Below are positions 6,728-43,300 of a stretch of DNA of 64,000 bases, piece by piece. The stretch covers positions 17,295,781 to 17,359,780 of the forward strand of contig OZ037767.1 in assembly GCA_964035545.1 (NCBI GenBank). The letters are read 5' to 3'. Origin of the DNA: Bugula neritina. Taxonomy: Eukaryota; Animalia; Bryozoa. Under the pieces are notes generated by a model that saw only the letters and a program-made list of their open reading frames with translations, ran no database searches and was not told the DNA's origin. A program made the translations under genes and the position numbers. The stretch's first letter is position 1; each line of letters opens with the position of its first letter.

Positions 6728-9700
6728 TCACTTCTTCATTCCAAATATAGTAAGTCTTCCAGCTTTGGCTGCTTCTTTAACTTTAGACCAATCAGTGAGC
6801 TCTTCACACTGAGATCCAAGTTCAGACAACCCTCCTTTCTTTGAACTGTCCATCCAGTTTCCAACAACCTGTATAAAGTGTCAACAAGGTGTCAATATAA
6901 CACCATAGTGTCTACATCATACAAGAGAAAGAAAATACAACAATTACAGTGCGAAAAAACGTTTACTAGAATAAAGATACTCAGATATAAACTCACGCAC
7001 ATAATCTACATGATAAACTAATGGCCATGTATAACAAAGGGAACAGGACTCTTAACACAATATATAAAATGGAGTACAAGACGCAACCTCATCTAACTTG
7101 TCTTTATCCAGTACACTCAGATAGTAGATGTATCTGAATCTATCAATAGTTTTACGGCATTTCCCTGTTGGTTTAAGAGCATCATGTATAGATTTGGCTC
7201 TCTTACTAGTAAGTTGTTTATGTACATATTCCATCAACTGTATAGCCTGTTCTGGTGTTTGTACTGCAAGGAACACAGGGTAAAATGCAAATACTTAGAA
7301 TACAATATACGATATCTTTGTACACAATAATATGCTGGTGGCAATTGGTATTTGTGTAGCTGCATAGAAAGTCATGTCTCAATATATAAAAAGAAATTGA
7401 GGCAACACAATTACTGTTGATGACGGAATGTGTGAGTAAACTGTAATACACTATTGAGAGGTGTCTCACCGTATTGGAAACTAGTTGCTACATTAGAAGT
7501 GGAGGGTGTATTGTTAAGAGCCGGAGTATCACAGATTCTCTCTGAAAACATAGCAGAATAAAAGTTTTACATTGGAATCACACAACTTTGTATGATTTTG
7601 CTCCAGCTGTTCTAGTTTGTCACAACAGCATGTCATGTGCTGACTAGAATATGAACTACATAGAAATATGCTCCTGTAATAACAATTATATATTATATCC
7701 TAACTAACTATAGGAGTACTGACATAGCAGTGTATAAATCTCATCACTAAGTCCCTCAATATATTTACATGTATGTACATATGTGATACCAGAAGTAGTG
7801 TAATTACTAACTCATTACTTTAACCAACCTGTTACTAGAGTTCTTTGATCTCCAACAACTACAGAGAATGGAATATCCACTTCACCAAGCATGATTGAAT
7901 CAGTGTACTCATAACGTGCTAGAATAATAATCACAATGAGTTTATAACTGAGAGAGAAATGATGTGTAATATAATAGCATATGATTAATAGCATATATCA
8001 GATAGTTGAATATATGTATATTCGGGTTTAGTAAGACTTTACCATCATTTAAAACAAGACATGTGACTCCAGGTCCACATTCCTTTCCAATCAGAAGGAG
8101 AAAACTCTCAATAGTCATGTCATCTCTGAATGGGAATATCTTATTCCGAGATTTGATTTTCAATGGGAGTTTATTGTATCTAACAGCACCTGTATCAGTC
8201 ATATGAAACAGAATTATAACTAAGTTCAATAGAATAATGAAATAAAAATTAATTGAAAAGTGATCAATCAAATGATGTCACTCACATTGCGTGGTGACAT
8301 CAGGTATAGTCTGCTCAGGTGTGACATCCATACCATGAAGTAGTCCCACAGTCTCGGGTACTTCTTGTGATGGAGGCTCTGTACTAACTAGTGTTTGAGT
8401 ATCTTGTACATGTGGTGGTTCAGAATACTCAGTGGTCATAGGAAAGTCAGCATTGCCAGCATCTGTATCACAATAATATACTTCAATGACAATAAAACAT
8501 TAACTGTTTTAGGATTATCTCCATATGTTTTGTTTTATATTTGAAACTGGAAGTTGTATGAAACCCATCGCATGTTTATGACAATGCAATAGCTATTCCA
8601 TTTGCTGCTCTTTGACCCCAAAGACAATATTCTAAGTATTCATTCTAAAAGATAAAATATAACATACCCATGCTTCTAGAAACTTTGGATGTTGAGGGGA
8701 ATACATCATTATAGAGTGGTCTTTTACTTCCAGATGGTGTTTCTGACTTGTTACTCAGTGTAGTAACTCGAACAGATGAAGTGCTCTCTTGTGATGGAGG
8801 TACTGAACTGCTGCTCTCACTGGCTGTGGTATGGGGTGTCAAGGTCACTGGTACATATGTCAGAGAAGATACATTCTCACTAAAAGATGAGTCAGTGAGA
8901 CCAAGCTGTGACACTGGATGATGAAACTGAGAGTTGAAGTTCTGCCAGTTGTTGAGTGTCGGATTAGCCTCTGGTAGAGCTGCTGGTTGCAAATCTGTGT
9001 ACCCCTTTGGTGTTGGTGTGGGCTGTGAGATGTTGGCATTGTGATACAGTGAGTGTGAAAGGAATGAGAAAGGTTTATTGCTAAGATGTGGTGGATTGAA
9101 AGGTGAATATTCCAGGGAATGTCGGAAGGGTGAAGCATTCTCTAGAGTAAATCGAGAGGGTAGACTGGTGTGGCTGGCTGGTGTTGGTGTCAACTGTGGA
9201 GTAGAAGGTGTGAGTTGGACTGGTTGAGTGGTGGAGTAGTTTGACAAATTCAGCTGTGGTGGGACATGCAGGTTACTTTGTATTGGTATAGTCAAGTCGA
9301 GGAGAGATGGTTGAAGATCTAAAGGAAGTGAATTGTGCTGGTCAGTTACTGGTTGAGGTGTGAACCATCTGGAAGGTTCTAAAGAACCAAATGCAGCAGG
9401 CAGCGGTTGATTGTAGATGAGGTTGCTGTTTTCCAATAAGCTATTAGCTTCTTGAATCTCTAAAATATAAAATATATTGCATTTCCTGAGGTTATTTCAA
9501 AGGCTGTGAGTAACTACAAGCATTTTCTTTCTCCAAGACCATAATACCAAAAAATAATATTAACAAACCAAATTTAAAATCTCTCAGCTAGCTCATACTC
9601 TATTAGCTGTATAGAACAAGTCATGCATGAGCACTGAGATAAAATTATATTCTTATTATCTGTCATTTATGATTAGCAATTAGTAATTATTTTTTTATTC

Positions 9701-11371
9701 ATGATTCGCTTAAAAGTTCATAATTATAATTGGGGAAAAAGTGAATATTTGTTACAATTAGTTTGCATTCTTTGAAACTGCATGGTCATTATTAGCTATT
9801 ATTAATGAGTTAGACTGGTAAAACTGGTGAGAGAAGACAACTACTGACAATATATCTAATGAATAATTATTTATATGCTGTATATATATAACAAATGACA
9901 CTGTCAACAAGCCATTGGTAAGCATAGATGTACAGCTATGAAAAACTCACTAGGTAGAGGGAAATATCACTGTAAAAAAACTAGACATTCATCAGCTAGA
10001 AGGAATTTGTATTGACTAGATTTTCTGCCATAAAACTGTCTGTAAAACGAATTAATGTAAATCTGAAAAGTTGAACTCACCTTGAAATCTGAGTTCTGCT
10101 TCATCCTGACACTGTTTAAGGTAAGACACAGTGTTTGTTTCTCCTCTTCTTTCTGCAACACTTAAAGGATTCTCATTCTTTGTGTTGTGAGTTTGGAGTA
10201 GCTCTAGTTGCTGTTTAGCATTAAGTTTATCCATCATTAGTTTGATCATATCTGTCTGTCCTTTACATGCTGCACTGTGTATAGCTGTATCAGCATATTT
10301 ATCCTGTATCTTGAGTAGCTCCACCTTCTGAGCTACTGATACACCATGTAGTAGGTACTTGATAGTGTCTGTAGGACCTCTCTCAGCTGCTCTGTGTATA
10401 GCTGTACTACCAAAACTGCCCTGTATCTTGAGTATCTCCACCTTCTGATCTACTGATACACCATCTAGTAGATATTTGATGGTGTCTGTATGACCTTCCC
10501 ATGCTGCACCATGTATAGCTGTATCACCACCACTACGACTCTGTATCTTGAGTAGCTCCACCTTCTGATCTACTGATACACCATTTAGTAGATATTTGAT
10601 GGTGTCTGTATGTCCCTTACATGCTGCATCATGTATAGCTGTATCAGCATATTTACCCTGTATCTTGAGTAGCTCCACCTTCTGATCTACTGATACACCA
10701 TCTAGTAGATATTTGATAGTCTCTGTATGACCTCTACATGCTGCTCTGTGTATAGCTGTATGACCATGACTACCCTGTATTTTGAGTAGCTCTACCTTCT
10801 GATCTACTGTTACACCATCTAGTAGGTATTCTATAATGTCTGTAAGACCTCCCCATGCTGCTCTGTGTATAGCTGTATAACCATCACTATCCTGTATCTT
10901 GAGTAGCTCAACCTTCTGATTTACTGATACACCATCTAGTAGATATTTGATAGTGTCTGTGTGTCCCATCAATGCTGCTCTGTGTATAGCTGTATAACCA
11001 TCACTATCCTGTATCTTGAGTAGCTCTACTTTTCGATCTACTGATACACCATCTAGTAGATATTTGATAGTCTCTGTTTCACCTATCCATGCTGCAAGAG
11101 GTATAGCTGTATAACCAACACTATTCTGTATCTTGAGTAGCTCCACCTTCTGAGCTACTGATACACCATCTACTAGGTATTTGATGATGTTTGTTTGACT
11201 TCTCTCAGCTACACTCTGTATTGTGTTATTCTCTCTCAACAGTTTACATCTCCCTTCTATTGACACATGTGGAAGACAGGATTTTAAACTTTTGATAATG
11301 TTGACCTCTTTAGATCGACCTCTTTTTATTTTAGATAATGTCTCTTGCAGCTTCTGTGTATGTTTCAACAT
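6728..11371 (-). CDS. Copy B: 8-exon gene, ~961 aa: ankyrin repeats (8 internal + 2 caps), P/S/T-rich linker, putative beta-grasp domain, CCDC106-like C-terminus
   Basis: Manual splice model, minus strand: 11371-10081, 9459-8668, 8462-8286, 8189-8043, 7918-7829, 7541-7470, 7263-7088, 6868-6728 (2886 nt). All introns GT..AG, phases 1,1,1,1,1,1,0, no internal stops, ends GRLTIFGMKK*. First junction reads ..RFQ E IQEANSLLENSN.. Confidence 0.85.
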
Positions 11372-11772
11372 TTTAATTTCTAAAATTATTATTTTAAATA
11401 CATTCAGCAACATGATACACAAAGGGTACGTGTTGTGTCACTTTGATTTTGCCACTTTTATTATTTATAATATACAATTTTATGTCACAAGCCTTTTGCT
11501 ATATATATACACATTACAGTATATGAACATACTATATACTATACACTAAAATATACTATAATCATATCATGTACTATATACACTAAAATATACTACAAAT
11601 ATATCATACCATACACTAAAATACTATACTATAGAGGCAGGTGAAGTATTAATGGAGAAATTTCTAAAAGCCTGTGTTCTAGTCCACAAATGTAGCAAAA
11701 GAAGTTATGTTCTCGCAAGAATTTCAACCCGCGCCCGAAATTCTGCTTTTACTGGTCCTAAGTGTAATAATA

Positions 11773-13530
11773 TCATACTATATATACACTATAGTATACT
11801 ATACTATGCTATATACACTGATTATACTGATCATACTATACACTAAAGTATACTATACTATGCTATACACTGATTATACTGATCATACTGTACACTAAAG
11901 TATACTATACTATGCTATACACTGATTATACTGATCATACTATACACTAAAGTATACTATACTATCCTATACACTGATTATACTGATCATACTATACACT
12001 AAAGTATACTATACTATCCTATACACTGATTATACTGATCATAATATACACTAAAGTATACTATACTATGCTATACACTGATTATACTGATCATACTATA
12101 CACTAAAGTATACTATACTATGCTATACACTGATTATACTGATCATACTATACACTAAAGTATACTATACTATGCTATACACTGATTATACTGATCATAC
12201 TATACACTAAAGTATACTATACTATGCTATACACTGATTATACTGATCATACTATACACTAAAGTATACTATACTATGCTATACACTGATTATACTGATC
12301 ATACTATACACTAAAGTATACTATACTATGCTATACACTGATTATACTGATCATACTGTACACTAAAGTATACTATACTATGCTATACACTGATTATACT
12401 GATCATACTATACACTAAAGTATACTATACTATCCTATACACTGATTATACTGATCATACTATACACTAAAGTATACTATACTATCCTATACACTGATTA
12501 TACTGATCATACTATACACTAAAGTATACTATACTATGCTATACACTGATTATACTGATCATACTATACACTAAAGTATACTATACTATGCTATACACTG
12601 ATTATACTGATCATACTATACACTAAAGTATACTATACTATGCTATACACTGATTATACTGATCATACTATACACTAAAGTATACTATACTATGCTATAC
12701 ACTGATTATACTGATCATACTATACACTAAAGTATACTATACTATGCTATACACTGATTATACTGATCATACTATACACTAAAGTATACTATACTATGCT
12801 ATACACTGATTATACTGATCATACTATACACTAAAGTATACTATACTATGCTATACACTGATTATACTGATCATACTATACACTAAAGTATACTATACTA
12901 TGCTATACACTGATTATACTGATCATACTATACACTAAAGTATACTATACTATGCTATACACTGATTATACTGATCATACTATACACTAAAGTATACTAT
13001 ACTATGCTATACACTGATTATACTGATCATACTATACACTAAAGTATACTATACTATGCTATACACTGATTATACTGATCATACTATACACTAAAGTATA
13101 CTATACTATCCTATACACTGATTATACTGATCATACTATACACTAAAGTATACTATACTATGCTATACACTGATTATACTGATCATACTATACACTAAAG
13201 TATACTATACTATCCTATACACTGATTATACTGATCATACTATACACTAAAGTATACTATACTATACTATACACTGATTATACTGATCATATTATACACT
13301 AAAGTATACTATACTATCCTATACACTGATTATACTGATCATACTACACACTAAAGTATACTATACTATGCTATACACTGATTATACTGATCATACTATA
13401 CACTAAAGTATACTATACTATGCTATACACTGATTATACTGATTATACTATACACTAAAGTATAGTATACTATGCTATACACTGATTATACTATACACTA
13501 AAGTATACTATACTATGCTATACACTGATC
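11773..13530. repeat. 52-bp minisatellite, ~34 copies (upstream of copy B)
   Basis: Same 52-bp unit. Period confirmed by identical lines at 12241 and 13021 (780 bp = 15 x 52). Confidence 0.95.
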
Positions 13531-13559
13531 ATATTATAAAAACAGGAAACGCTATAATA

Positions 13560-13760
13560 TAATGATGACCTATGTGTTAGTCATTAAACAGATTGTATTG
13601 TAGTCAAACTGTATTACGGCATTCCTTCATGCTGCTCACAAATGCCGCACGGTTAGATGCCAGCAGCGATGGCACGGACCAATCAACATCAAGCTCTCCT
13701 TTATAAGTTGGACATTCTGATTGCCCACACATTTGGTTACTGGGACTACTACTGAGCTTG
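13560..13760 (-). promoter_or_regulatory. Conserved non-coding block upstream of each gene copy (possible promoter)
   Basis: Relatively GC-rich block kept in all four units (~1570-1790, 13560-13760, 28410-28620, 44500-44710), with TATAAA on the minus strand (cctttataag) and CCAAT in B-D. Function is inferred from position only. Confidence 0.25.
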
Positions 13761-14129
13761 CTAATTTATAATTTTTAATATTATTGTTTAAACTTTTGTC
13801 TTGGTGTAATTGTAATTGTTTAGTATTGTAAATATAATTTCTCTTTCAAGGACTGCAATCCCAGTTCTTTCTCTCAAATACACAAAGAGTATACTTTAGC
13901 TAATTTACTAGACTGGTTCTTAGACAATCACTTTGATGTGTGAATCCAACTCAGTTCACATAATTTGAATCACTCAACATTAGAGTTTCTTATTTAGAAA
14001 ATTTTTCCGAGTAATATGATAAACTTCACTAATTATAATGAAGGTACATCTCTGTAACCATATATTACATCGACTATGTATATTGCAAAGTGATGTCTAC
14101 AATACATCCTACGGTATCCTTTGTATAAC

Positions 14130-14178
<49 letters not shown>

Positions 14179-14540
14179 TGGTAGTGGTAGTGGTAGTGGT
14201 AGTGGTAGTGGTAGTGGTAGTGGTAGTGGTAGTGGTAGTGGTAGTGGTAGTGGTAGTGGTAGTGGTAGTGGTAGTGGTAGTGGTAGTGGTAGTGGTAGTG
14301 GTAGTGGTAGTGGTAGTGGTAGTGGTAGTGGTAGTGGTAGTGGTAGTGGTAGTGGTAGTGGTAGTGGTAGTGGTAGTGGTAGTGGTAGTGGTAGTGGTAG
14401 TGGTAGTGGTAGTGGTAGTGGTAGTGGTAGTGGTAGTGGTAGTGGTAGTGGTAGTGGTAGTGGTAGTGGTAGTGGTAGTGGTAGTGGTAGTGGTAGTGGT
14501 AGTGGTAGTGGTAGTAGTAGTAGTAGTAGTAGTAGTAGTG
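14130..14540. repeat. Compound microsatellite (GTA)n(GTAGTG)n(GTA)n
   Basis: Paralog of 2162-2677 with identical flanks (ttgtataac / cactaatattactag). Confidence 0.97.
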
Positions 14541-14565
14541 CACTAATATTACTAGATTCACTATA

Positions 14566-15875
14566 GGGGTAACAGGGGCACAACGGGCCAAATTTCACAT
14601 TTTTCGCTCTCATTCGTCTGTTTTTCAAGTCACTAGTTCAATAATCTCTAGTCTTAATGCTGCATCTGTTGTCTATTACAGGTATCAGGTGTCAGCTTTC
14701 TATTTCTCTCACAACTTTCAGAATAATGAAGTTTTCATGATGAAAAACTCAGCCCGTTGTGCCCCGGTACCCGGGTACAATGGGCCACCGGGTGGGACAC
14801 AACAAATATATTGAAACTTTGCCGATTTTGTTGCATCCGCATGATCTTTACTTATTCAATATTATACAAGTAGACAAAGATATTCTTTCAGATCTACAGC
14901 AAAATTCATATTTTAGCTGTACAGTTTGTGCCACCACGGATAGCAGACAAAGGCAACATCAAATGCACATCACTCGGTTCTACGGTACCATTATCATTAC
15001 TGTTCAGAACTAAAATGTTTTTTTTATTTTGACTTTAAAGGAACTTTTATCAGAAAAAAACTTTAGTAACATGTATTACAAATTTCCGTGTGGACTTTTT
15101 TCTATGAACTGTAGCTAAAGTGAATGGCTCCGGTTTGTGGCTGGAGTATGGAACGGAGAGGGGGGAGGGAATGAGCAAACCACAATTTATTTTAGTCAAA
15201 TACATGAATATTCCCTCAATGATATAATATATAATAAATATCATGACTATCTACTAGTAGCAACAACAGAGTGTTTTGTATTATATGCATAAATCGCCAA
15301 AGCTTAAACCTCACCACTCACCAGATGTAAATATATTAGGGGAGCTTCACCTTGTAGTTTTGTATAGTCTTACCATGATGTCTTTGATATTTTACCGAAA
15401 GGTCAGAAATGGCTATATCTATGGATTTTATTAACTTTTCAACCAACTTTTTGGGCGAACAAACTAATAACACTGATCAGGGTGCAATAATCAAGTGGCC
15501 CATTGTGCCCCGGTAAGCGTGGCCCATTGTGCCCCGTGTGGCCAAATTGAAAACAAATGCGGCTCAAGAAAAATTTATTTCAGTGTTTGCTATTATACTA
15601 GTTAAGCAATGTAGAGACAAGCAATAGCAACAATATCAGGGAAATCTAGGCTTGTTGCATTTGAGTGTAAAAAGTTATAAAGCTTTAAAACAACATCCTA
15701 AAAAATTTACAAAAAGTAGGTGAAAACAGTTATTTACTCGCCTTTTCAACAATTATGTTCCGCAAGTGTTGAAACTACAATGGCTGAATAATTATGTCAA
15801 TACCTTTTTATGAAAATAAAATCACAACTCTAAGTCAATAAGTTCTTTCTCAATTTGGCCCGGTTTTTATACCCC
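14566..15875. mobile_element. Paralogous copy of the same TIR element (duplicated with the segment)
   Basis: Same ends and flanks as 2703-4108. It is 96 bp shorter because it has two rather than six 24-bp units. Confidence 0.6.
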
Positions 15876-15896
15876 TATGACTGTTGTGCCTCACTT

Positions 15897-18800
15897 TCCA
15901 CCACAGTATTTGTAATATATATAACTATATAGTAAGTATAGTATGTATTATATAATTATTATATAACTATAGCAAGTACATGTATTATATGACTGTAATA
16001 TAACTACATGTAAAGTAAGTGCATATGTATTATATAACTATTATAGAAAGTATATGTAACAAACAAAGATTACACAAGAGTGACTATTAGCAAATTCTTA
16101 GACAAACATTGTATGAAGTATAATATATTGGTTATTATATGTTCCACTCTTCTATTACACAGCAATATTATAAAGTAGTACAATAATTCACATATAAACA
16201 GCATTATATACTCACATATCTCTGTTAGCTTAATTATCCCTTGTACACTGTATGATGCATTATATCATGTATCTATAGCTGCAGTACTATGCTAACTGTG
16301 ACACCTATGTATACACAGCTATACTTTGTTTTCTCATAAACCAATCGGAAAGTTATTACCTCATACACTGGAAATACCAGTTTAATGGAAACCTCCATGG
16401 CTATTATACTTGTTCTGTGATCTGCTAAGGAATTCTGATCAATAACAAAATTATAGGAAGAATGGATTAGCGCATTGTATGCTTGGGTTGGGCTGCTAGG
16501 AGACATAAAAATATGTGTTCTGTATTTATGTCTAAGTCATAAGTATACAGTCTATGCAAACTCAGAACAATGTGACTATGAAATCCTTAGGCCTATTATT
16601 GGCTTATACATGGTTGCAAGGACATATAACATCAAGTGTTTCTGTGATTTGTTTATGCCAATTTATTTTTGATGTCTTATGTCTTTTATTGTGAATCTTA
16701 AATAAGTTGTTTTGTAACTTGCAAAATAGTTTAAACAATTCACATTATAAGATAAATGGTACTGGTTCAACTTTCCCACAGCTAGGTGGTTCAACTTGCT
16801 CCCTACTAGGGCGTGTTGTGCCCAAAAGTTGGCCATATCTTAGTCAGTGAAATATTTATGCATTTATTTTCAATGGACAAAGACAGCAACATGGGACTAA
16901 CTTTCATGGTGCTGATCTTTTTATTAGTATAGTAGTAGGGTACTAATATTACTAGAGTTACTATATACACTACATACTATTTTATGTCATATTAACTAAT
17001 TTACTAACTTCATATGGCAGTGACTATTCTATTATCATACTTGGTGGTTAGTCTGCCTGCAACTTTGTACACTGAAGTCCTAGAGTATCTCAATGAATAG
17101 TACGTATTTGTATTATGTAACTATAGTAAGTATAGTAGTAAATGTGAAAAAATAACTCTACTATGATAAAGGCATGAAAAGATAACTTTACTATAACACT
17201 TTCCACCACAGTATTTGTAATATATATTACTATGTTATAGTAAGTATTATAGTGTGTATTATATAACTATATAACTATAGCAATTACATGTATTATATGA
17301 CTGTAATATAACTACATGTATAGTAAGTGCATATGTATTATACAACTGTTATATGAAGTATATGTAACAAACAAAGATTACACAAGAGTGACTATTAGCA
17401 AATTCTTAGACAAACACTGTATGAATTATAATATATTGGTTTTTATATGTTCTACTCTCTTATTACACAGCAATTATAAAGTAGTACAATAATTCACATA
17501 TAAACAGCATTATATACTCACATATCTCTGTTAGCTTAATTATCCCTTGTACACTGTATGATGCATTATACCATGTATCTATAGCTGCAGTACTATGCAA
17601 ACTGTGACACCTATGTATACACAGCTATTTTGTTTTCTCATAAGTTACTCGGAAAGTTATTACCTCATACACTAAAAATTCCAGTTTACTGGAAGGCTCC
17701 ATGGCTATTATACTTGTGCTATGTGATCTGTTAAAAAAATCTGATCAATAATATTATCATAATAGTTATTGATTAGCACATATAGTATACTTGGGTTGGG
17801 TTGCTAGGAGACATGCAAAACATGTAATCTGTATTGTGTGTAAATCATGAGTATACAGTCTATGCAAACTCAGAACAATGTGACTATTAAATCCTTAGCA
17901 CTATTATTGGCTTATACATGGTTGTAATGACATATCACATCAAGTGTTTCTGTGATTTGTTTATGCCAATTTATTTTTGATGTCTTATGTTTTTTGTTGT
18001 GAATCTTAAATAAGTTGTTTTGCAACATGCAAAATAGTTTAGACAATTTATATTATAAGATAAATGGTACTGGTTCAACTTTCCCACAGCTAGGTGGTTC
18101 AACTTGCTCCCTACTAGGGCGTGTTGTGCCCAAAAGTTGGCCATATCTTAGTCAGTAAAATGTTTATGCATTTATTTTCAATGGACAAAGACAGCAGCAT
18201 GGGGATAACTTTCATGGTGCTGATCTTTCTATTAGTATAGTAGTAGGGTACTAATATTACTAGAGTTACTATATACACTCCGGACTATTTTATGTCATAT
18301 TAACAAATTTACTAACTTCATATGGTAGTGACTATTCTATTATCATACTTGGTGGTTAGTCTGTCTGCAACTTTGTACACTGAAGTCCTAGAGTATCTCA
18401 ATGAATAGTACGTATTTGTATTATGTAACTATAGTAAGTATAGTAGTAAATGTGAAAAAAAAACTCTACTATGATAAAGGCATGAAAAGATAACTTTACT
18501 ATAACACTTTCCACTGCAGTATTTGTAATATATATAACTATATAGAAAGTATAGTATGTATAATATAATTATATAACTATATAGCAAGTACATGTATTAT
18601 ATGACTGTTATATAACTATACATGTATAGTAAGTGCATAAGTATTATATAACTATTATAGAAAGTATATGTAACAAACAAAGATTACACAAGAGTGACTA
18701 TTAGCAAATTCTTAGACAAACAGCGTATGAAGTATAATATATTGGTTATTATATGTTCCACTCTTCTATTACACAGCAATTATAAAATAGTATAATAATT

Positions 18801-25661: not shown

Positions 25662-25864
25662 TTTTATTTCTAAAATTATTATTTTAAAAACATTCAGCAA
25701 CATGATATACAAAGGGTACGTTTTGTGTCACTTTGAGTTTGCCAATTTTTATTATTTATAATATACAATTTTTTGTCACAAGCCTTTTGCTACATACACA
25801 TTATACAGTATATATAAACATACTATATACTATACACTAAAATATACTATAATTATATCATGTA

Positions 25865-26838: not shown

Positions 26839-28391
26839 TACTATACAGTAAAGTATACTATACTATGCTATACACTGATTATACTCATCATACTATACAC
26901 TAAAGTATACTATACTATGCTATACACTGATCATACTGATCATACTATACACTAAAGTATACTATACTATGCTATACACTGATTATACTGATCATACTAT
27001 ACACTAAAGTATACTATACTATGCTATACACTGATTATACTCATCATACTATACACTAAAGTATACTATACTATGCTATACACTGATCATACTGATCATA
27101 CTATACACTAAAGTATACTATACTATGCTATACACTGATTATACTGATCATACTATACACTAAAGTATACTATACTATGCTATATACTGATTATACTGAT
27201 CATACTATACACTAAAGTATACTATACTATGCTATACACTGATTATACTGATCATACTATACACTAAAGTATACTATACTATGCTATACACTGATTATAC
27301 TGATCATACTATACAGTAAAGTATACTATACTATGCTATACACTGATTATACTGATACTACTATACACTAAAGTATACTATACTATGCTATACACTGATT
27401 ATACTGATCATACTATACACTAAAGTATACTATACTATGCTATACACTGATTATACTGATCATACTATACACTAAAGTATACTATACTATGCTATACACT
27501 GATTATACTGATCATACTATACACTAAAGTATACTATACTATGCTCTACACTGATTATACTGATCATACTATACACTAAAGTCTACTATACTATGCTATA
27601 CACTGATTATACTGATCATACTATACACTAAAGTATACTATACTATGCTATACACTGATTATACTGATCATACTATACACTAAAGTATACTATACTATGC
27701 TATACACTGATTATACTGATACTACTATACACTAAAGTATACTATACTATGCTATACACTGATTATACTGATCATACTATACACTAAAGTATACTATACT
27801 ATGCTATACACTGATTATACTGATCATACTATACACTAAAGTATACTATACTATGCTCTACACTGATTATACTGATCATACTATACACTAAAGTCTACTA
27901 TACTATGCTATACACTGATTATACTGATCATACTATACACTAAAGTATACTATACTATGCTCTACACTGATTATACTGATCATACTATACACTAAAGTCT
28001 ACTATACTATGCTATACACTGATTATACTGATCATACTATACACTAAAGTCTACTATACTATGCTATACACTGATTATACTGATACTACTATACACTAAA
28101 GTATACTATACTATGCTATACACTGATTATACTGATCATACTATACACTAAAGTATACTATACTATGCTATACACTGATTATACTGATCATACTATACAC
28201 TAAAGTATACTATACTATGCTATACACTGATTATACTGATCATACTATACACTAAAGTATACTATACTATGCTCTACACTGATTATACTGATCATACTAT
28301 ACACTAAAGTCTACTATACTATGCTATACACTGATTATACTGATCATACTATACACTAAAGTCTACTATACTATGCTATACACTGATTATA
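26839..28391. repeat. 52-bp minisatellite, ~30 copies (upstream of copy C)
   Basis: Same unit with copy-specific variants (gctctacac, aagtctact). Confidence 0.95.
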
Positions 28392-29718: not shown

Positions 29719-31242
29719 CAATCATAAATTAAATGATGAATATTCAAAAAGAACCCTTTACTACCAATCAACAGAGTAAAATACAAGTAATTGTTAAGAA
29801 CCTCAATAGTAAAGTTGACAAACATGCTGTAGTTAGCACAGTATATAGGCTGTAGAGTAGTAACACTGTATTGACTATGTGTCCACTACTAGATCTCATT
29901 GAGTGGTTGTAATCAATGATATCTACATCTCACTGTACTAACTGTAATACTGTATCGGTTTGTGTTTGTGTCTGGTTGCAAGATATGCTTTAACTACTAG
30001 CCAATTTGGCAACAGGTTTTCGAGTTTATCAACTGTCAAATCGTACCCTAGAAAAATGGGAAACATTAGAAATTGTATAAGTAAGTAGTCACAATATAAA
30101 TCAAAATTCAAAGGAATACCATGAACATTACAGAATCGAACAAATTGACATAAACTATTATAATTCTAATAAACTTACAATATTGATGCGTAGGTAAAAT
30201 TATTAGCCATCACAATACCGAAACCGATAGTTTATTCTTACAAAGAGTGTAAATATGGCGGTTTGATCATGATACACTGACTCATGCAGTACAGTGAATG
30301 CACTAGCTCTGCCAGCTAATAGTAGCTTAGGTGAAAGCTTTGAAGTTTGAAAGCTTTAATGATTGGCTGCCTGCCAATACTTCTGGGTGGCATACCAATA
30401 CAAATACTAATACATGTTAACCTACTTTACTACCTGAGAATCTACTAAACTGGTTCTTATAGACAATCACTTTGATGTGTGAACCTTATTCAGTATATGC
30501 CCTTTAAATCACTCAACATTAGAGTTTCCTATCTAGAAAATTATTGTGTAAATATGGTAAACTTCACTAAGTATAATGAAGGTACATCTATGTAACCTTA
30601 TTATATGTTGAGTAAAGTGATTCCTACAATACATCCTATATGGTATTACACTTTGCATAACAAGTATGTATTATTATTACTAGAGTTGTTATATAGACTA
30701 CATATATTATAAACTATATTTTATGATATTAACAATTTTACTAACCTGATTGTAGTGATTATTCTGTCATACTTAGTAGTTAGTCTGTCTGTCACCTACT
30801 ACCTAGTACCACTCAAGTGTTACTACTATAACTATTGTAGTGGTTAGTGAAGCATGAATACTCCCTGTGCAAATAAGCCGATCACTGTTAGGCACGTGAT
30901 TACCCCCCCCCCCCCCCCCCCCCGGCAAAGCTGAACGCCTCCGGAAAGACACACTTAGAGTAGAGTTAGTTAGTAGTGTGATGCCGAATGTGCAAGTAGC
31001 AGATATACGTTTTATGTTTTATGAAGTAATGTATTAGTTTGCCTCGTGTATATATTGTGATAAATATAATCTTCTTCTCCTACTACTTGTCCTGTGTTTG
31101 AGAGTATAAATCCAGCAAGTGCAGTACAGTTGGACCCACCTTAACATTATTATTCAGAGAAATTATAACAGTAGTGGCAGCAGTGGGATCCTAATACTAG
31201 CACGAATGCAACCTAACTGACAACTCGACAACCACAACTAAG

Positions 31243-34200
31243 ATGGCAGGAGAATCAACTCGACAGAGAGAAGGTGAGCCTGATATCACTATAGCTTTAA
31301 AAGGCCCAGTGTGGCAAAAAGAAGAGGCCTACAGATATCGCCTGAAAGCTCCTACTTTTACCGGGTTAGAAGACGTAGAAAAGTTTGTCCAGGAATTCAA
31401 AGAGGTGATAGACCACACCCAATGGCCACCCAGAGTGGCTTTGATCTAGCTACGAAGAGCGTTAACAGAACAGGCCAAGCCGTGCGGACTAAGAACTAGC
31501 ATAGACGGAATCTTTGCTGCGCTACGGGCCCGTTTTGGTATTTCCGCAATAGGTGCCAGGACCCGCTTATAGAGGTTATGCCGCACTTCACAGACATCTC
31601 TACAAAAACATGCGGCTACGATGAAGAAACTGGCACAGATCGCGTATAGCGACTCACCAGTGCAACACTAAGAACGCTATACATATGTTGCTTTTGTTCA
31701 GTCATTGAATGACTTGGGTCTACACCACCAACTACAAGCAAAAGGGTGGAAAACGCCTTGGGAGCAGGAGAGGCTCATTTACTAGCAACTCAACTACATA
31801 AAGGACAGGGAAGCCCTCAACCACTTGCCATAAACGCCCCGGAAGGACCCACAGAACCGCTACCCCATTTTCAAGCTGTGGCGACCCCATCCGGCTCCCC
31901 CTAGGATGCGGAGGTCAATCGCATGGCGGGGATGTTAAAACAGTTGGTAACGATCCTCATCCACTCCAACTCCATCAAACCAAAACCGAGGCCTCGGCGG
32001 TTGCCTATGGCACCTACGATTCCAGGTTGGGGGTGCGATACTCAGGACCGTCCCCGCATGGAACACCCCCGGAATAAAAGAGTGTTTAACTACCACTGCC
32101 CGCGGATGCATTCCCTCCCCGTGGGCAAAAAATAAAGAATCATTGAGGAACACACCGCCGGCTAACTGTGCAGACGCGACGGTATGCTCCTCACGAATGG
32201 CAGGTACCACGTAGGACCAGCCGACCAGAACAGCAGCCAGGTACCTACTCTCTGCCACCCACCAACCGTTTCCTCTGGTTACCAGACGAAGAAGAGCCAA
32301 CCACTGACCTAGAGCCGGAAAGCCAAGTGGAAAGCTCGAACCCTCCCCCGAAACCCTATCCGGGTAGAACCGAACACGCGGTGGGGTGAAGGTACAACCA
32401 CACGGAGATAGTTATTTCCTACCAGGGAAGGTGGCGAGTAAAACTGCCATTTTCCTGCTAAACTCCGGTTGTACTACAAACCTTCTCAGTCGCAGGGTCT
32501 TCGAGACGCTGCCCCGCCAAGACAGGGACAGAGTACGGCCATACACGGGGGAACACAGCCCTCTGGCAGACTGGTCGTGTATCCTCTTCTACGGTATCGT
32601 AGAACTCACTGGGTGTGTCCAGGACCAATTCATAGAGGAAACATTTGCCATTAGCCAGCTCGAAGAAGATGCTATACTCGGCATGCCCTTTTTGAAACGC
32701 CATAAGTGCCGCATCGATTTTAGTAAGTCGACGGTACTGATGGCCGGACGAGAACTCACTTGTGTGGATAAGTCCGGCCGCCCTCTAGTAGGCAGTGTCC
32801 AGGTGGTGCGGAACCGCACCGTACTGTGGCGCTCCCGGACTACTATTCACTGCAAGGTAAATGATAACTGGATCTCTGGACTCAGGGTGGTAGAAAGCGC
32901 ACGAAAGAATCCAACTTGCTAACAGTCTAAACCAGCTGACCGCGTGAGGAGAGATCTTGTTGCAGTGCGTAAACCCCTTTACAGAGTCGATAAAAATACC
33001 CGCCGAATTCATGCTGGGCCGTTTCTACTCTGCCCAAGAAGAGGACGTGGGCCCGTCGCTTGGGGATGCGACGGAAGAGCCCCCACGGCACCCGCAAAAA
33101 AGGCGGGAGACCGTCCCACCACACATCAAGGAGTTGTAGGAGACAGGTTGTGGTGGCGGTGCAAGCAACGAGGAACGTCAGGCTATGGCAAAGTTGTTAG
33201 GCGACTACGGTGATGTGTTCAGCAGCAGAGATCATGGCGTGGGACTGACCGGAGCTGTCAGACACAAGATACCGCTGACTGCAGGAAGGCCGGGAAATAG
33301 TAGTAGCTTACTACAGTAAGTCTCTCTCACCCACTGAACGAAATTACTGCACTACCCACAAGGAATTACTAGCAATACGTATCATGCCTCCCTGATTTGG
33401 TTGTGCAAGAGAGCGGAACCGTCCAGTCAGGTCGCCCGGTGGCTCGAAATCCTAGACGAGTTGTTTTACCGGATCGAACATCGACCGGGCAAGAGGCACA
33501 GCAATGCGGATAGCTTGAGCCGACAACCTGAAGGGGGCTGTAAACAGTGTCTCAACATCGAAAAGAGGGATGGAGGTCCCCCACGGTACAAGTTAGGGGC
33601 ACTGGCTCACCACTGAGCACGGTTTGACTGGGACCAGGGTCAACTCCAACAGACAGTGGACGAGACTTTGGAGGCGGTACAAAACCTCCGCGCCAACCCT
33701 GTTTTGGCTGAGAACGTCCGGGAATTGAGGAGGCTTCAGGAGAACCTCCCTGGAATAGTAGCCGATGTATATCGGACCAAAAAGGAAAAGCGACGACTCA
33801 GCGAAGAATAACTCAGGCAGGGATGCGCCGAATTCCGGCTGTTCTGCCAACGTTGGGACTCACTGAGGATCGGGCAGGATGGTCTGCTAACCATTTATCT
33901 AGCTGCCAACAGCAGACATCCTGAGAGAAAGTGGGTGATCTGTCCCACTGCCATACGCCGTGAGTTAATCTGGAACACTCACAAGCAGGCTCACGCAGGA
34001 GTCCAGCGGGTGATCTCCAAATCACAGCTCCGGTGGCACTGGCCCAAGATGCGGCGTGATGTCTAACTCAGAATAAAGCAGTGTAAAAACTGCCAGGCCA
34101 GCAAGCATGGCCGTCTCCCTGGTGAAGCGGGACGGCGAAAGTTATATGCTGGACAGCCGTGGCAAGTAGTAGCTGTCGACCTGGTCGGACCCATGCCCCT

Positions 34201-35330
34201 GACCCCCAGAGGCAACAGTTGGATCCTAGTATTAACCGGCCACTTCACCAGGTAAGCTGACGCTCTGGCAATCCCAGATACTTCAGCTCCGACAGTGGCC
34301 AGGGTGCTAGACCAACATGTATTTTGTTAATCTAGGTTTCCCTGAACGGATACATTCTGACCAAGGCGCTCAGTTCCAGTCTCAACTGATGAGCGACCTC
34401 TGCCGCCACTGGGGAGTGAATCAGAGCAAGACCACTCCCTACCACCCTGAAGGTAACGGGGTGGTGGAGCGCAATAACCGGGTGCTAGGTGATGCGCTCT
34501 GGATTCTACTCCTCGGACGTAGTCAGGAGGAATGGGACACGGTGTTGCCGCAAGTCATGCGCGCATTCCGTAGCACACCACACACCAGTACTGGTGAGAC
34601 CCCAAACCTCTTGATGCTCGGGAGAGAGACTCGGGTCCCTGACCATCTTACCTACCATGTTCAGGGCAAAACAGCTCGATTCACGAGTATGCCAGTGAAC
34701 TAGTGGAACGGATGAGGGTCGCACACAAAATGCTGCAAGAAAAGCAGTGACAGGTGTGCGCGAAGACTACGAAGAGCCACCCCTCTATCAGACAGGAGAT
34801 TGGGTGTAGATGGTCAATTACCGTAGGCGTCGCAGACAGGCGGCTAAATTACAGCCCAAGTTCTTGGGACCCTACGTAGTAGTTGAGGCTATGCCCAACC
34901 ATACGGTTACAAGATCGAGCGCTCAGGACAAGTGTCCATCCAAAATGAGGCTCGCTTGAAGCCGTATTGGGCTAGCCCAGACGCAGTGGGAGAAGCCCCT
35001 CGTATGTTGGAGCCCAGGAGGCAGACGGCAACGCGTGGGCGACAGTGGCATGGTCCTGAGTAAGAGGTGGTCATTCCGCGGGAAGAAGACTTGGTGCGAG
35101 ACGAGCGACAAATTCCATCCACAGAAGTGCGCCCGCCGCCTCCGACTCCAGGTCTGACACCATCACTTCCAGAAACCGAGCCGATTCCGGAAGTGCAAAC
35201 CCTCACAGAGGGAGGGGCTCCATCCGGAGAACACGAAGAAACAACCACTGCTGAGAAATCAGAATCACCGCCAGTGGAACCTAATAGTCCACCAGTGTAT
35301 CTCAAACTCACAATTGATACTGAACGTTGA
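31243..35330 (+). pseudogene. Disrupted gag-pol of Gypsy element 1
   Basis: Fragments YRLKAPTFTGLEDVEKFVQEF (gag), KVQPHGDSYFLPGKV (protease), integrase core. Many stops and frameshifts. RT and most of RNase H are deleted at ~33280-33286. Confidence 0.88.
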
Positions 35331-35388
35331 GTATGTCGCTAAATACCAAGTTCTCTGGTAAGCCTACCTAAGTCTTGTATTCTTATCT

Positions 35389-36470
35389 ATAGAAACAGGC
35401 TTGATGCCAGTTAATTTTGAACTAATAAATCTGATTGAATCAGAATTACTGGAGACCACGTCTAATGTGAATGACGACTAGGACATAGTAATGGCCGATG
35501 ATCTGTTAGATCTCGAGCTAGAAACTATCATTCTTGGTCAGTCTACACGTAGCAAACCGGTCTCTCGAGTGCCTTATAAAAGTTGTGACCCTCAGACTAC
35601 TAACAGTTTATCGTCACTAGAATTATGTTGTAAAGATCTATCTCGATTTGACAATAATTCTACTTTTGTAGACGACACTCGCTCTCTCGTCTCACAAGGG
35701 ATGCCATCTTTTGAGATGGCCTGGAATCCAAAACCCCTAGTACCTACAAAATCTGATCGGAAACTACTTCACGCACTGGAAACAAAATCTTGCTGGATTA
35801 CACCAGCAACTGAGAAGGAGATACACAGGTATAGAGGCGACGAAGATAATACGGAGTGTCGCCTATGCCAACAGCACTTTACCACGCACCGCACGCTACG
35901 GGTCCACCTCCCACAGCAATTTGGGACAACCTTCTGTTCCTCTGGTGAATACAGTTACCACAGGCACTATATCCTGAGGCATCAGAGAACAATGAATTGT
36001 TTTCCCGGCCACCCCTACAATGTGGATGAGAGCTCTTACCCCACTTTCTTAGATCTTGTACGGCCCTTCGTCACAGACCCCGCTCGACTGGCGCATCTTA
36101 CCCAGGGATTCCCGCTCCCCGACCTATCACCCCAGGACCTACCACCAAAATCCCTGGCTATTCCACCAACTCACCTCCTACCTCCATCCGTCGTCCTAGG
36201 ACCATTCCCCGCGTTCTGTTACAATGCATAGATACTCAACCGTATACTCTTCCTCCTCTCCTTCCCCCGGCGGATCGGAAAAGACGCAGGTCACACCACT
36301 CCCCTTCACGTCATTGTCCTCTGGTCCGCAACTTGCGGGAAGTCGAATTGAGAGCTAACAAATTAAAAAGGGAAGTCCATCGTTTAGCCCACAGGATTAG
36401 GGAGGCAGCCAGCGAGTTACAATCTCTCCAAGACTCTATCAACAAACTTAAACGCTCTACTAAGGACTAG
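35389..36470 (+). pseudogene. Extra ORF3 of Gypsy element 1: C2H2 zinc-finger + coiled-coil protein (disrupted)
   Basis: Lies between integrase and PPT. CRLCQQHFTTHRTLRVHLPQQ..GEYSYHRHYILRHQRTMNC, ending RNLREVELRANKLKREV..SINKLKRSTKD*. Collinear with ORF3 of element 2. Confidence 0.75.
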
Positions 36471-38508
36471 TGCAGCATTTATCTCCCAAGACTCTCCACT
36501 CGGGATATTATCTCCTTCCTCCTCCATCCTGGTGCTCGACCGGTGCTGTAAGAACTGCTCTTATAAATAGGATCAATAAATAATTGCATGCTTATCAGTA
36601 TATATTTTTTATGTGTCCTCTTTTTTATTATTCTGATATTTGTTTTTATATACATATGTACAGTTTTTTAGTATGCGTCCCTTCCACTTAGTTTTTAGCA
36701 GAAAGTAGGCTCCCTGCTGGAGGAGGCGGTGTAGTGGCCAGTGAAGCATAAATACTCCACGTGCAAATTAGCCAATCACTGTTAGGCACGTGATTACCCC
36801 AGCCCCCCCCCCCCGGCGAAGCAGAACACTTCCGGACAGATATACTTAGAGTAGAGTTAGTTAGTAGTGTGATGCCGAATGTGCAAGTAGCAGATATACG
36901 CTTTATGTTTTATGAAGTAATGTATTAGTTTGCCTCGTGTATATATTGTGTTAAATATAATTTTCTTCTCCTACTGCTTGTCCTGTGTTTGAAAGTACAA
37001 ATCGAGCAAGTGTAGTACAGTTGGACCCACCTTAACATTATTATTCAGAGAAATTATAACAATATGCAGTCCATATAATATCTTCTCCTACTAACAATAC
37101 AGTTTTTTTATGCAGGAAGTTTGAGACGTGATGCATGGGGAATTCCATTTCCCTAGTAATGAGTAATATTGGGAAATTCCTATTTCCCTTGTATTACTCA
37201 CTACTGTCAACTACTGTCATTAAGCATGTTGAATGATGAGGGCACTTGATTTATTATTGAAAGACACCACGATTGGCTACGTAGTCATGACTTTCATACA
37301 TGAACATATACAGTGTTATTATTGTCTCCAATATCAGAGAGTGAACTTCTCTGTGATGGTGTTGGAACTCTTGATTCTAAATATTACATCATATAAACTA
37401 CCATACTATAAAACTACCCACCATTTACCCAGCACTTACTTGCCTACTACAAGATTACCCACTTCACTGGAAAATTACAGTAACTGCAATTGAAATATGA
37501 ATTGGCTTACGAATTCAGCTTATTCATTTGATTTTAAACAGAAATTGTTGTTTTCACCCAACGATATTTAATACAGCTTTAATATCTAATATATATTTAG
37601 TATTAAAATACTCTTTAGCTCTTATACATTGATATATCTGCTGTTATTCAAGAAGTTTTAATATGAATAAATAGTTGAGTAACATTTATCTAGTCTAATA
37701 AACTGCTTAGTGTCATTTTCTGAGACTTAGTCTCAGTCATATCATGGTGCTGAGACACTCTGTGGTTTATTTATTGACTAGGAAAGGCAGGTGGTTGACA
37801 GGAGCTTTAAGTTGACTCTCCTGCATATAATATATAGTATAAGTTTCAGCTTTATGCAGGTCTACTGACAGCTAACTGTGAAACTCATATGAATTTCAGA
37901 GCTTATATATGTCAGATTATTGTTTATAGTTTGTGTGTGAAATTTCTTTGGGCTACAGATTGGAAGATAAATACAAGGAGTTGAATAACAGATTAGTTTA
38001 TATTTGAAATAATTTTTAAGCAAAGTAAGAAAACTAAATACTCAAATATTAATGAAGCAAGGAAAATGTAGTAATATAGACACATATGATAAATGAGTAA
38101 TATAAACATATATGATAAATGAGTAATATAAACATGTATGATAAATGAGTAATATAAACACACTTGAAATAAACTTTGCTTGAGGTTTTGTGTTTGGTGT
38201 TTTGTGTTGTCAAAAACAGTAAGAAGAATAGATAGCAATAAACATCTGAAAGGATGTCCCAGCTGTCAATATTATGTGATCATACAGTAAAACATGCTGA
38301 AATAAATTGAATAATATAAATACTTCATTTCATAACTGGAATACAGACATTAAGATGCAGCAATTTTATCCATGTAAATTCTGCAACATTCACTTCTGGA
38401 TTCATAAATGTCATAGGGAAACGGTTTCGTTATAAATTACATATTTTGATAAGTTTTTGAACAAATGAGGATAGTCTGCGTATACGTCAATAGTTCACAA
38501 TTCTCCCA

Positions 38509-41500
38509 TCACTTCTTCATTCCAAATATGGTAAGTCTTCCAGCTTTGGCTGCTTCTTTAACTTTAGACCAATCAGTGAGCTCTTCACACCGAGATCCAA
38601 GTGCAGACAACCCTCCTTTCTTTGGACTGTCCATCCAGTTTCCAACAACCTGTATAAAGTGTCAACAAGGTGTCAATATAACACCATAGTGTCTGCATCG
38701 TACAAGAGAAAGAAAATACAACAATTACGGTGTGAAAAAACGTTTACTAGAATAAAGAAACTCAGATATAAACTCACACACATAATCTACATGATAAACT
38801 GATAGCCATGTATAACAAAGGGAACAGGACTCTTAACACAATATATAAAATGGAGTACAAGACGCAACCTCATCTAACTTGTCTTTATCCAGTACACTCA
38901 GATAGTAGATGTATCTGAATCTATCAATAGTTTTACGGCATTTCCCTGTTGGTTTAAGAGCATCATGTATAGATTTGGCTCTCTTACTAGTAAGTTGATT
39001 ATGTACATATTCCATCAACTGTATAGCCTGTTCTGGTGTTTGTACTGCAAGGAACACAGGAAAAAATGTAAATACTTAGAATACAATACGCAATATCTTT
39101 GTACACAATAATATGAAGCTGACAGTGAGTATTTGTTTTATAGCTGCATAGAAAACGATATGTCAATATATAAAAAGAAATTGAGACAATACAATTACTG
39201 TTGATGACGGAATGTGTGGGTAGACTGTAATACACTATTGAGAGGTGTCTCACCATATTGGAAACTAGTTGCTACATTAGAAGTGGAGGGTGCATTGTTA
39301 AGAGCAAGAGTATCACAGACTCTCTCTGAAAACGTAACAGAATAAGAGTTTGACATTGGAATCACACAACTTTGTATGATTTTGCTCCAGCTGTTCTAGT
39401 TTGTTAACAGTTGGACATTTTACATTTTCAGTTCTGGTAACATAACACAGCATGTCATGTGCTAGTTAGAATATGAACTACATGGAAATATGTTCCTGTA
39501 ATAACAATTATATATTGAATCCTAACTAACTATAGGCGTACTGACATAGCTGTGTATAAATCCCATCACTAAATCCCTGAATATCTTTACATGTATATAT
39601 AATATTATCCCAGAAATAGTGTAATTACTAACTCATTACTTTAACCAACCTGTTACTAGAGTTCTTTGATCTCCAACAACTACAGAGAATGGAATATCCA
39701 CTTCACCAAGCATGATTGAGTCAGTGTACTCGGAAAGTTCTAGAATAATAATCACAAAGAGTTTATAACTGAGAGAGAGATGATGTGTAATATAATAGCA
39801 TATGATAAATAGCATATATCAGATAGTTGAAGATATGTATATCCAGGTTTAGTAAGACTTTACCATCATTTAAGACAAGACATGTGACTCCAGGTCCACA
39901 CTCCTTTCCAATCAGAAGGAGAAAACTCTCAATAGTCATGTCATCTCTGAATGGGAATATCTTGCTCCGAGATTTGATTTTCAAAGTGAGTTTATTGTAT
40001 CTAACAGCACCTGTACCAGTCATATGAAACAAAATTATAAAAATTTTGAGTTCAATAGAGTAATGAAATAAAAATTAATTGACAAATAATCAATTAAATG
40101 AAGTCACTTACATTGAATCGTTACGGCAGGTAAAATCTGCTCAGGTGTGACATCCATATTATGAAGTTGTCCCACAGTCTCGGGTACTTCCTGTGTTGGA
40201 GGTTTTGTACCATTTAGCATTTGAGTGTCTTGTACATGTGGTGGTTCAGAATACTCAGTGGTCATAGGAAAGTCAGCATTGGCAGCATCTGTATCAACAT
40301 AATAGATGTCAATGACAATAAAACATTAACTGTCTTAGGATTATCTCCATATCTTTTGTTTTGTAATTGAAATTGGAAGTTGTATGAAATACATGGGATG
40401 TTTATGACAATGCAATAGCTATTCCATTCCCTGCTTTTTAACTCCAAAGATAATATTCCAAGTATTTATTCCAAATGATAAAATATAACATACCTAAGCT
40501 TCTAGAGACTTTGGATGTTGAAAGGAATACATCATTATAGAGTGGTCTTTTACTTCCAGATGGTGTTTCTGACTTGTTACTCAGTGTAGTAACTCGAACA
40601 GATGAGGTGCTCTCTTGTGATGGAGGTACTAAACTGCTGCTCTCATTGGCTGCGGTATGGGATGTCAAGGTCACTGGTACAGATGTCAGAGAAGATACAT
40701 TCTCACTAGAAGATGAGTCAGTGAGACCAAGCTGTGACACTGGATGATGAAACTGAGAGTTAGAGTTTTGCCAGTTGTTGAGTGTCTGATCAGCCTCTGG
40801 TAGAGCTGCTGGTTGCATATCTGTGTACTCCTTCGGTGTTGGTGTGGGCTGTGAGATGTTGTCATGATTATACGGTGGCTGTGTTAGGAATGAGAAAAGT
40901 TTGGAGCTTGGAAGTGGAGGATTGAAAGGTGAATATTCCAAGGAATGTCGGAAGGGTGAAGCATTTTCTGGAGTAGATTGAGAGGGTAGACTGGTGTGGC
41001 TGGCTGGTGTTGGTGTCAACTGTGGAGTGGAAGGTGTGAGTTGGACTGGTTGCGTGGTGGAATAGTTTGACAGACTCAGCTGTGGTGGGACTTGCAGGTT
41101 GCTTTGTATTGGTATAGTCAAGTCAAGGAGAGATGGTTGAAGATCCAAAGGAAGTGAATCGTGCTGGTCAGTTACTGGTTGAGGTGTGAACCATCTGGAA
41201 GTTTCTAAAGAGCCAGACTCAGCAGGCAGCTGGTGATTGTATGTTGAGTTGTTGTTTTCCAATAAGCTATTGGCTGCTTGAATCTCTAAAATATAAAATA
41301 TGTTGCATTTCCTGAGGTTATTTTAAAGGCTGTGAGTAACTATACAAGCATTTTCTTTCCCCAAGACATTTTACCAATATATATTACCGAACCAAGTTTA
41401 AACTTTTTCAGCTAACTCATAATCTATTAGCTGTATAAAACAAATTATTAGCATTGAGATAAAATTAAATATTCTTATTCTCCGTCATCTATGATTAGCA

Positions 41501-43300
41501 ATTGGTAGTTTATTTATTCATAATTCCATTCAAGTTCATAATTAGAATTGTTACAATTAGTTTGCAGTATTTTCAACTAAATATTATTAGCTATGAATTC
41601 TAGTATTATTCCACCCATGTAACTGTACCAGTATATCAGACAAAGATGTACATTCTGTTGGCTAGACAGAAGTTCATGAAAGATGAATATAGATGTTATT
41701 ACTGGGTTAAACAGATAAAACTGATGAGAGAAGACAACTACAGATAATATCAAATGAATGATTATTTAAATATGCAGTGTATAGCAGCAACACTGTTAAC
41801 GTTATTATGTTACAAGTCATTGGTGAGCATAGATGTACATGAACTTAAGTCACTATATGGAAGGAAATATCATCTTAAATAACAGCTAGAACGGCTAGAC
41901 ATTCATCAGCTAAAAAGAACCTATTATTAGATTTTGTATTGTCTAGATTTTCTGCCATAAAACTGTCTGTAAAACACAAATTAATGTAAATCTGAAAAGT
42001 TGACCTCACCTTGAACTCTGTGTTCTGCTTCATCCTGACACTGTTTAAGGTAAGACACAGTGTTTGTTTTTCCTTTTCTTTTTGCAACACTTAAAGGAGT
42101 CTTATTTATTGTGTTGTGAGTTTTGAGTAGCTCTAGTTGCTGTTTAGCATTGAGTTTATCCATCATTAGTTGGATCATTTGTGTGTGACCTTCCCATGCT
42201 GCACCATGTATAGCTGTATTAGCACCGTATCTACTCTGTATCTTGAGTAGCTCAACTTTCTGATCTACTGATACGTCATCTAGTAGGTATTTGGTAGTCT
42301 CTGTATGACCTTCCCGTGCTGCACTGTGTATAGCTGTACTATCATAAATACCCTGTATCTTGAGTAGCTCCACCTTCTGATCTACTGATACACCATCTAG
42401 TAGGTATTTGATGGTCTCTGTATGACCTCTACATGCTGCGCTGTGTATAGTTGTCCTACCATCACTACTCTGTATCTTGAGTTGCTCCACCTTCTGATCT
42501 ACGGATACACCATCTAGTAGATATTTGATAGTATCTGTATGACCTCCCCATGCTGCCCTGTGTATAGCTGTATAACTATCACTACTCTGTATCTTGAGTA
42601 GCTCAACCTTCTGATCTACTGATACACCATCTAGTAGATATTTGATGGTGTCTGTATGACCTTCCCATGCTGCACTGTGTATAGCTGTATCAGCATATTT
42701 ATTCTGTATTTTGAGTAGCTCCACCTTCTGAGCTACTGATACACCATCTAGTAGATATTTGATGGTGTCTGTATGATCTACCCTTGCTGCTAGGTGTATA
42801 GCTGTATAACCAACACTATCCTGTATCTTGAGTAGCTCCACCTTCTTCTCTACTGATACACCATCTAGTAGATATTTGATAGTGTGTGTATCACCTATCC
42901 ATGCCGCAAGAAGTATTGCTGTATAATCATCACCAGTCTGTGTCTTGAGTAGCTCAATCTTCTGATGTACTGATACACCATCTAGTAGGTATTTGATGGT
43001 CTCTGTATGACCTCTCTTGGCTGCATTGTGTATAGCTGTACTACCATCACTACTCTGTATCTTGAGTTGCTCCACCTTCTTCTCTATTGATACACCATCT
43101 AGTAGATATTTGATAGTGTCTGTATGACCTCTCTCAGCTACACTCTGTAGTGTGTTTTTCTCCCTCAACAGTCTACATCTCTCTTCTATTGACACATGTG
43201 GAAGACAGAGTTTTAGGCTTTTGATAATGTTGACCTCTTTAGATCGACCTCTTTTTATTTTCAATAATGTCTCTTGCAGCTTCTGTGTATGTTTCAACAT
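38509..43300 (-). CDS. Copy D: 8-exon gene, ~961 aa, same architecture with 8 internal ankyrin repeats
   Basis: Exons 43300-42010, 41285-40494, 40288-40112, 40010-39864, 39739-39650, 39325-39254, 39044-38869, 38649-38509 (2886 nt). GT-AG sites and exon lengths are conserved and no stops were found in the spliced frame. Confidence 0.85.

Follow-up and report, generated by a model that had tools for sequence, protein, structure and literature searches.

Ankyrin repeats occur in transcription factors such as yeast Swi4/Mbp1, plant CAMTA, and NF-kB p105. In fungal NLR sensors with high internal conservation, the ankyrin (ANK) repeats are polymorphic in number and under positive selection at the hairpin and the inner helix (PMC4986451; PMC13449251). 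LEAFY, described as plant-only, pairs an oligomerizing SAM domain with its DNA-binding domain (DBD) (PMC8287900), and the C-terminal domain of human CCDC106 binds p53 (PMC10713525).

We analyzed a window of 64,000 nucleotides from Bugula neritina in which tandem genes encode a variable N-terminal ankyrin array, a linker, and a tail predicted to hold a beta-grasp domain and a helix-turn-helix (HTH) domain of the CCDC106/LEAFY fold. As in fungal NLRs whose ANK/WD/TPR repeats have high internal conservation (Podospora HNWD, Pa_3_8560), the repeats are homogenized and variable in number (here between paralogues), selection acts on the hairpin and inner helix, and the proteins form an intracellular, paralogous repertoire. 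The Bugula family, however, contains neither NACHT nor NB-ARC, its repeats are N-terminal, and its fixed part is a beta-grasp plus an HTH-type domain instead of a death effector. With Swi4/Mbp1, CAMTA, and NF-kB p105 it shares ankyrin repeats and a DNA-binding domain (here predicted) in one chain, whereas those proteins have other DBD folds, another domain order, low copy number, and conserved repeats binding fixed partners. Like DARPins, the arrays carry variable residues on one face of a near-constant framework (PMC8683736), but DARPins are engineered, while the Bugula arrays are natural, germline-encoded, fused to a tail, and built from a 39-aa repeat with a 6-residue insertion. CCDC106 (PF15794) has the same predicted fold as the last domain and weak sequence similarity to it; it has an N-terminal coiled coil where the Bugula proteins have the ankyrin array, linker, and beta-grasp, and it lacks ankyrin and beta-grasp domains, whereas the Bugula side is a multigene family. 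LEAFY shows no detectable sequence similarity, its domain measures 160 residues against ~113 here, it lacks an ankyrin array, and the Bugula family has a beta-grasp in place of its SAM. Judged by score or architecture, the family is a member of neither CCDC106 nor LEAFY. The earlier note had not recognized this domain combination, and our literature search, with most subscription journals outside its reach, likewise turned up neither a description of the architecture nor a paper treating these genes or a CCDC106–LEAFY link.

The features of the cluster within the window are as follows.

10081-11371, minus strand: copy B exon 1, an N-cap, eight ankyrin repeats of 39 aa (117 nt), and a C-cap, with a phase-1 donor at the end (Ank_2, 1.9e-72)
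8668-9459, minus strand: copy B exon 2, linker rich in P/S/T/Q, a bipartite-NLS-like KR motif lying towards its end
8286-8462, minus strand: copy B exon 3, the acidic stretch that closes the linker
8043-8189, minus strand: copy B exon 4, N-terminal half of the predicted beta-grasp (MCU-NTD-like) domain, fold taken from the paralogue KAF6034061
7829-7918, minus strand: copy B exon 5, C-terminal half of the beta-grasp domain
7470-7541, minus strand: copy B exon 6, short flexible spacer (pLDDT under 50)
7088-7263, minus strand: copy B exon 7, helices 1-3 of the CCDC106/LEAFY-like domain with the predicted helix-turn-helix; the most conserved exon of the family
6728-6868, minus strand: copy B exon 8, final helices of the CCDC106/LEAFY-like domain and stop codon
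21256-25661, minus strand: copy C, intact, 844 aa, five repeats; exons 25661-24722, 23999-23208, 23002-22826, 22730-22584, 22455-22366, 22072-22001, 21791-21616, and 21396-21256
38509-43300, minus strand: copy D, intact, 961 aa, eight repeats; exons 43300-42010, 41285-40494, 40288-40112, 40010-39864, 39739-39650, 39325-39254, 39044-38869, and 38649-38509
196-901, minus strand: copy A exon 1, three repeats, the remainder of the gene lying left of the window
11783-13529: 52-bp tandem array upstream of copy B, part of the duplicated unit, also at 1302-1555, 26839-28391, and 44030-44475

The apparently stand-alone ankyrin reading frames had been read in the earlier note as first exons splicing in phase from a CAAG/GTGAG donor, and the gene structure agrees: copies B, C, and D use the same phase-1 donor, their exons 2-8 measure 792/177/147/90/72/176/141 nt in each copy, and their introns are all GT–AG, with phases 1,1,1,1,1,1,0. 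The joined frames are open and without internal stop (961 aa in B, 844 aa in C, and 961 aa in D). The proposal of an eight-exon gene stands for the coding exons, while an extra 5′ exon is possible because an acceptor-like TTAG lies 8 nt 5′ of the ATG in all eight copies of the cluster. Copy A has an in-frame TAG at 380-382, at a hypervariable position, and is probably a pseudogene or truncated allele.

We aligned Logan contigs from four public runs, belonging to four studies, to window positions 6450-11750. Contigs from three studies span the junction 10081/9459, the shorter flank reaching up to 217 letters; the other six introns were also absent from contigs, and a single 1,146-nt contig spans exon 2 to exon 7. 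Transcripts stopping after the ankyrin exon with the first junction unspanned, an outcome that the earlier note named as refuting the gene model, did not occur, and the spliced contigs rule out stand-alone ankyrin ORFs or pseudo-exons. That the four runs are RNA is a guess, clean removal of the introns making it the simple reading. As the spliced contigs are mostly 90–95% alike to the copy B region, coming from paralogues or other colonies, splicing is proven for the family and not for copy B itself. In one contig of run X2, position 7829 is joined to 7263, skipping exon 6 (7470-7541) in frame, and alternative splicing of this spacer between the two tail domains is possible.

The head was confirmed as strongly variable between copies. 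Ankyrin gave a Pfam match over the cut-off (Ank_2, 240 bits, eight stretches in copy B exon 1), and the 39-aa repeat exceeds the usual length by six. Along the window cluster, the paralogues of this one assembly have 21, 3, 3, 8, 5, 8, 2, and 2 repeats, with mean repeat identities of 80–91% at the nucleotide and 67–85% at the amino acid level; only the 21-repeat copy reaches the 85% over 100 aa used in PMC4986451. This copy (L027 875-3682; C3:17.267-17.270 Mb) consists of a recurring three-repeat unit with 91% mean nucleotide identity and has a GC donor after exon 3. Copies C and D have three repeats in common at 97–99% and differ in the others, as would be expected from gain, loss, or exchange of units.

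Among 36 distinct repeats, the scaffold is almost fixed, and entropy reaches 2.2–2.5 bits at positions 1, 3, and 5 in the hairpin and 10, 13, and 14 in the helix. DARPins are randomized at positions 2, 3, 5, 13, 14, and 33 (in their numbering), and these were set in advance as the positions of our selection test. A two-class codon model gave an omega of 2.75 at the test positions and 0.67 elsewhere (LRT 28.1, p ~1e-7, a value that is optimistic because recombination among repeats lies outside the model); with the tree built from scaffold codons only, omega at the test positions was 3.8. Pair counts from B-D alone gave a pN of 0.40 against a pS of 0.18 (ratio 2.2, bootstrap 1.7–2.9), and as synonymous change is low at the test positions, a local mutation hot spot does not explain the pattern. 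The hairpin and inner-helix codons of the binding face thus change faster than neutral on a conserved scaffold, under positive selection.

The companion claim, that the tail hardly changes, held within the window cluster, where exons 7-8 are 97.5–98.3% and exons 2-4 93–94% identical at the nucleotide level, but not in a second cluster, where exon 4 is only 31–46% identical. Exon 7 alone stays 93–98% identical with the second cluster included and is under strong purifying selection. The predicted fold of the paralogue KAF6034061 upheld the beta-grasp assignment of the earlier note, and fold comparison and weak sequence similarity upheld that of a CCDC106-like last domain: residues 175-283 of the Atlas model XP_067930686 matched the CCDC106 cluster with a TM of 0.83 over 106 residues, the next match being 0.47 (both predicted models). 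In a predicted model, the last domain also matches the fold of the LEAFY DBD; its nearest folds are all DNA-binding HTH domains, and it is basic. These models point to a nuclear DNA-binding "effector" (helix-turn-helix, LEAFY-like). The similarity to PF15794 is weak (E 0.002–0.03; the best match, with 17.2 bits and E 0.005, lies below the gathering score of 30.2 bits), with three of 46 family members at E under 0.1, and PF17538 (C_LFY_FLO) had no sequence match to the tail. Profile searches of the genome with PF15794 and PF17538 found nothing, the controls being silent too, and no useful match came from the PDB by sequence, from the Atlas by features of KAF6034061, or from viral folds and phages. 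The KR motif near the linker end recurs in Watersipora as well as in the two Bugula subfamilies and is a possible nuclear signal.

A search with exon 7 placed the family at ~19 genes in the Bugula neritina genome: eight copies at C3:17.26-17.40 Mb (the window cluster, seven of them intact with an open frame), nine at C3:15.16-15.88 Mb, and single copies at C2:32.25 Mb and C8:12.06 Mb, the latter divergent, besides weaker tail fragments. In the second C3 cluster, for which we used match coordinates, loci of 3 kb, a single outlying copy, and GenBank models, ankyrin frames of 220–826 codons lie a few kilobases upstream of eight of the nine tails, and a stop or frameshift interrupts two copies. 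Ankyrin heads are likewise present in the C2 and C8 copies; the C8 gene (C8:12052465-12059666, L039), a single divergent member with nonhomogenized repeats 26–30% identical to copy B and the family tail, is a candidate for a conserved gene of ancestral type. Three divergent, partly broken tail fragments lie at C2:19.978-19.989 Mb (L041-L042), with no ankyrin frame in the 20 kb retrieved. Other tandem arrays, at C3:4.48-4.51 Mb and C2:30.51-30.55 Mb, contain long single-exon ankyrin frames (490–1010 codons) with no exon 7 match nearby.

Bugula neritina KAF6034061 and KAF6025908 match the window tail almost exactly. Watersipora subatra XP_067945400 and XP_067945256 have the parts in the same order, with the same five tail exons and matching boundaries. 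The tails of Bugula and Watersipora fall in separate groups (100/100; 11 rows; long branches flagged) and their ankyrin repeat consensus differs, which points to separate expansion and homogenization in each lineage; the same repeat positions vary in Watersipora on its different consensus. The remaining homologues are single-exon fragments on metagenome contigs, and two of four traced fragments include contigs named BRYA16, probably from a bryozoan sample. A word-based homologue search with the ankyrin C-cap gave nothing useful. A well-known conserved single-copy gene, the other finding that would contradict the earlier note, is ruled out by the ~19 copies and by relatives found only in bryozoans or metagenome contigs, and a transposon ORF by seven conserved introns and the lack of transposase or RT domains. 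Domain searches of the window gene model were run exon by exon. No Pfam match to NACHT or NB-ARC was found in any exon or in the full-length Watersipora protein, and a motif scan found no P-loop GxxxxGK[ST]; without an NTPase, an NLR is ruled out. Unlike surface allorecognition receptors of the Alr and fuhc/fester type, and as the earlier note had claimed, the proteins show neither a signal-peptide-like start nor a TM segment in a hydropathy scan (top 19-residue value 1.47), and a classical surface allorecognition receptor is unlikely because the protein has no route to the surface.

Taken together, this is a real, spliced, and expanded family under diversifying selection, with an undescribed architecture and a probable DNA-binding output. 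We give an even chance to its being a soluble one-chain, lineage-expanded family in which variable protein recognition is coupled to a putative fixed DNA-binding module. Each ankyrin array would bind a different fast-evolving intracellular protein (microbial, viral, transposon, or non-self), the P/S/T/Q linker would be a tether or activation region, the beta-grasp domain would self-associate as SAM does in LEAFY, and the last domain would bind one common DNA motif, so that many inputs would converge on one set of loci. New specificities would come from unequal crossover, repeat exchange, and point change. Ligand binding, nuclear location, oligomerization, DNA binding, and any immune role are what we infer. 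A bolder and rather doubtful version would make the family a natural DARPin-like repertoire fused to a sequence-specific transcription factor, in which foreign-protein binding switches genes without an NTPase or signaling cascade; in this version the LEAFY domain, supposedly confined to plants, would have its animal homologue in the DNA-binding domain of the family together with CCDC106.

One of two main rivals, since human CCDC106 binds p53 through its C-terminal domain, is a variable adaptor acting on proteins instead of DNA, in which a target captured by the ankyrin array would be passed on by the tail to a constant partner (proteasome, ubiquitin ligase, or p53-like factor), comparable to ANK-SOCS-box and ANK-F-box proteins. 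We regard this as unlikely: no exon, nor the full-length Watersipora protein, had a Pfam match to a SOCS box, F-box, or RING, no diglycine terminus was observed, and the basic last domain has only DNA-binding HTH domains as its nearest folds. In the other main rival, the same molecular design would serve a genomic arms race, the proteins binding transposon, satellite, or germline-conflict proteins and tethering them to chromatin or silencing their loci, in the manner of KRAB zinc-finger clusters but with the roles of the variable and the fixed part exchanged. A predicted nuclear DNA-binding tail related to transposase HTHs fits such a transposon conflict, as do tandem clusters interleaved with LTR elements and satellites and an expansion separate in each lineage; but transposons are common near tandem arrays, and the variable part of KRAB-ZNF proteins reads DNA, in contrast to the protein-binding face here, and we consider this quite unlikely.

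Bryozoans are colonial, and the genes could determine allorecognition after colony fusion, like fungal het genes, with ankyrin alleles recognizing polymorphic self proteins in a shared cytoplasm. The repeats do evolve like fungal HiC sensors (PMC4986451, PMC13449251), yet the diversity here is between paralogues and not alleles, and with neither surface exposure nor a death-effector domain this is very improbable. Broken copies (A with its stop; the two in the second cluster) and the near identity of copies E and F would suit young duplicates of an ordinary ankyrin transcription cofactor, with repeats turning over neutrally under relaxed constraint. Relaxation, however, cannot raise pN twofold above pS as on the binding face; with the same positions varying in Watersipora and seven of eight copies retaining an open frame, neutral turnover is the least credible of these explanations.

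Hardly any molecules of bryozoan immunity and self-recognition are known, and this family offers candidates in which an arms-race signal can be measured. Where hypervariable repeat sensors have been described, they mostly come with NTPase and death domains; a DNA-binding output would be new. The predicted fold link between the tail, CCDC106, and LEAFY raises two questions: does human CCDC106 bind DNA, and do relatives of the LEAFY domain exist beyond plants? The repeats are also a naturally evolved binder scaffold.

The surrounding DNA is rich in repeats. GTA/GTG microsatellites at 2162-2676 (upstream of A) and 14133-14540 (upstream of B) occupy the equivalent place in the duplicated unit and yield spurious poly-Val and poly-Leu ORFs. 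A short element just upstream of copy B (11650-11745), seen in many unrelated contigs of all four runs, probably represents a small dispersed repeat. A decayed Gypsy-type LTR element (30836-37064, plus strand) lies between copies C and D, with LTR-like repeats at 30836-31173 and 36730-37064 (92% identical) and an integrase fragment at 34317-34703. A second, related Gypsy-type element (44888-52444, minus strand) has terminal repeats 95% identical, separate frames for RT/RNase H (48302-49888) and for the integrase (47233-48108), and extra frames after the integrase (45600-46625). From 54611 to 64000, a 41-bp satellite of >228 copies (96% identical, 17% GC) continues past the window end, and two further family copies lie beyond it.
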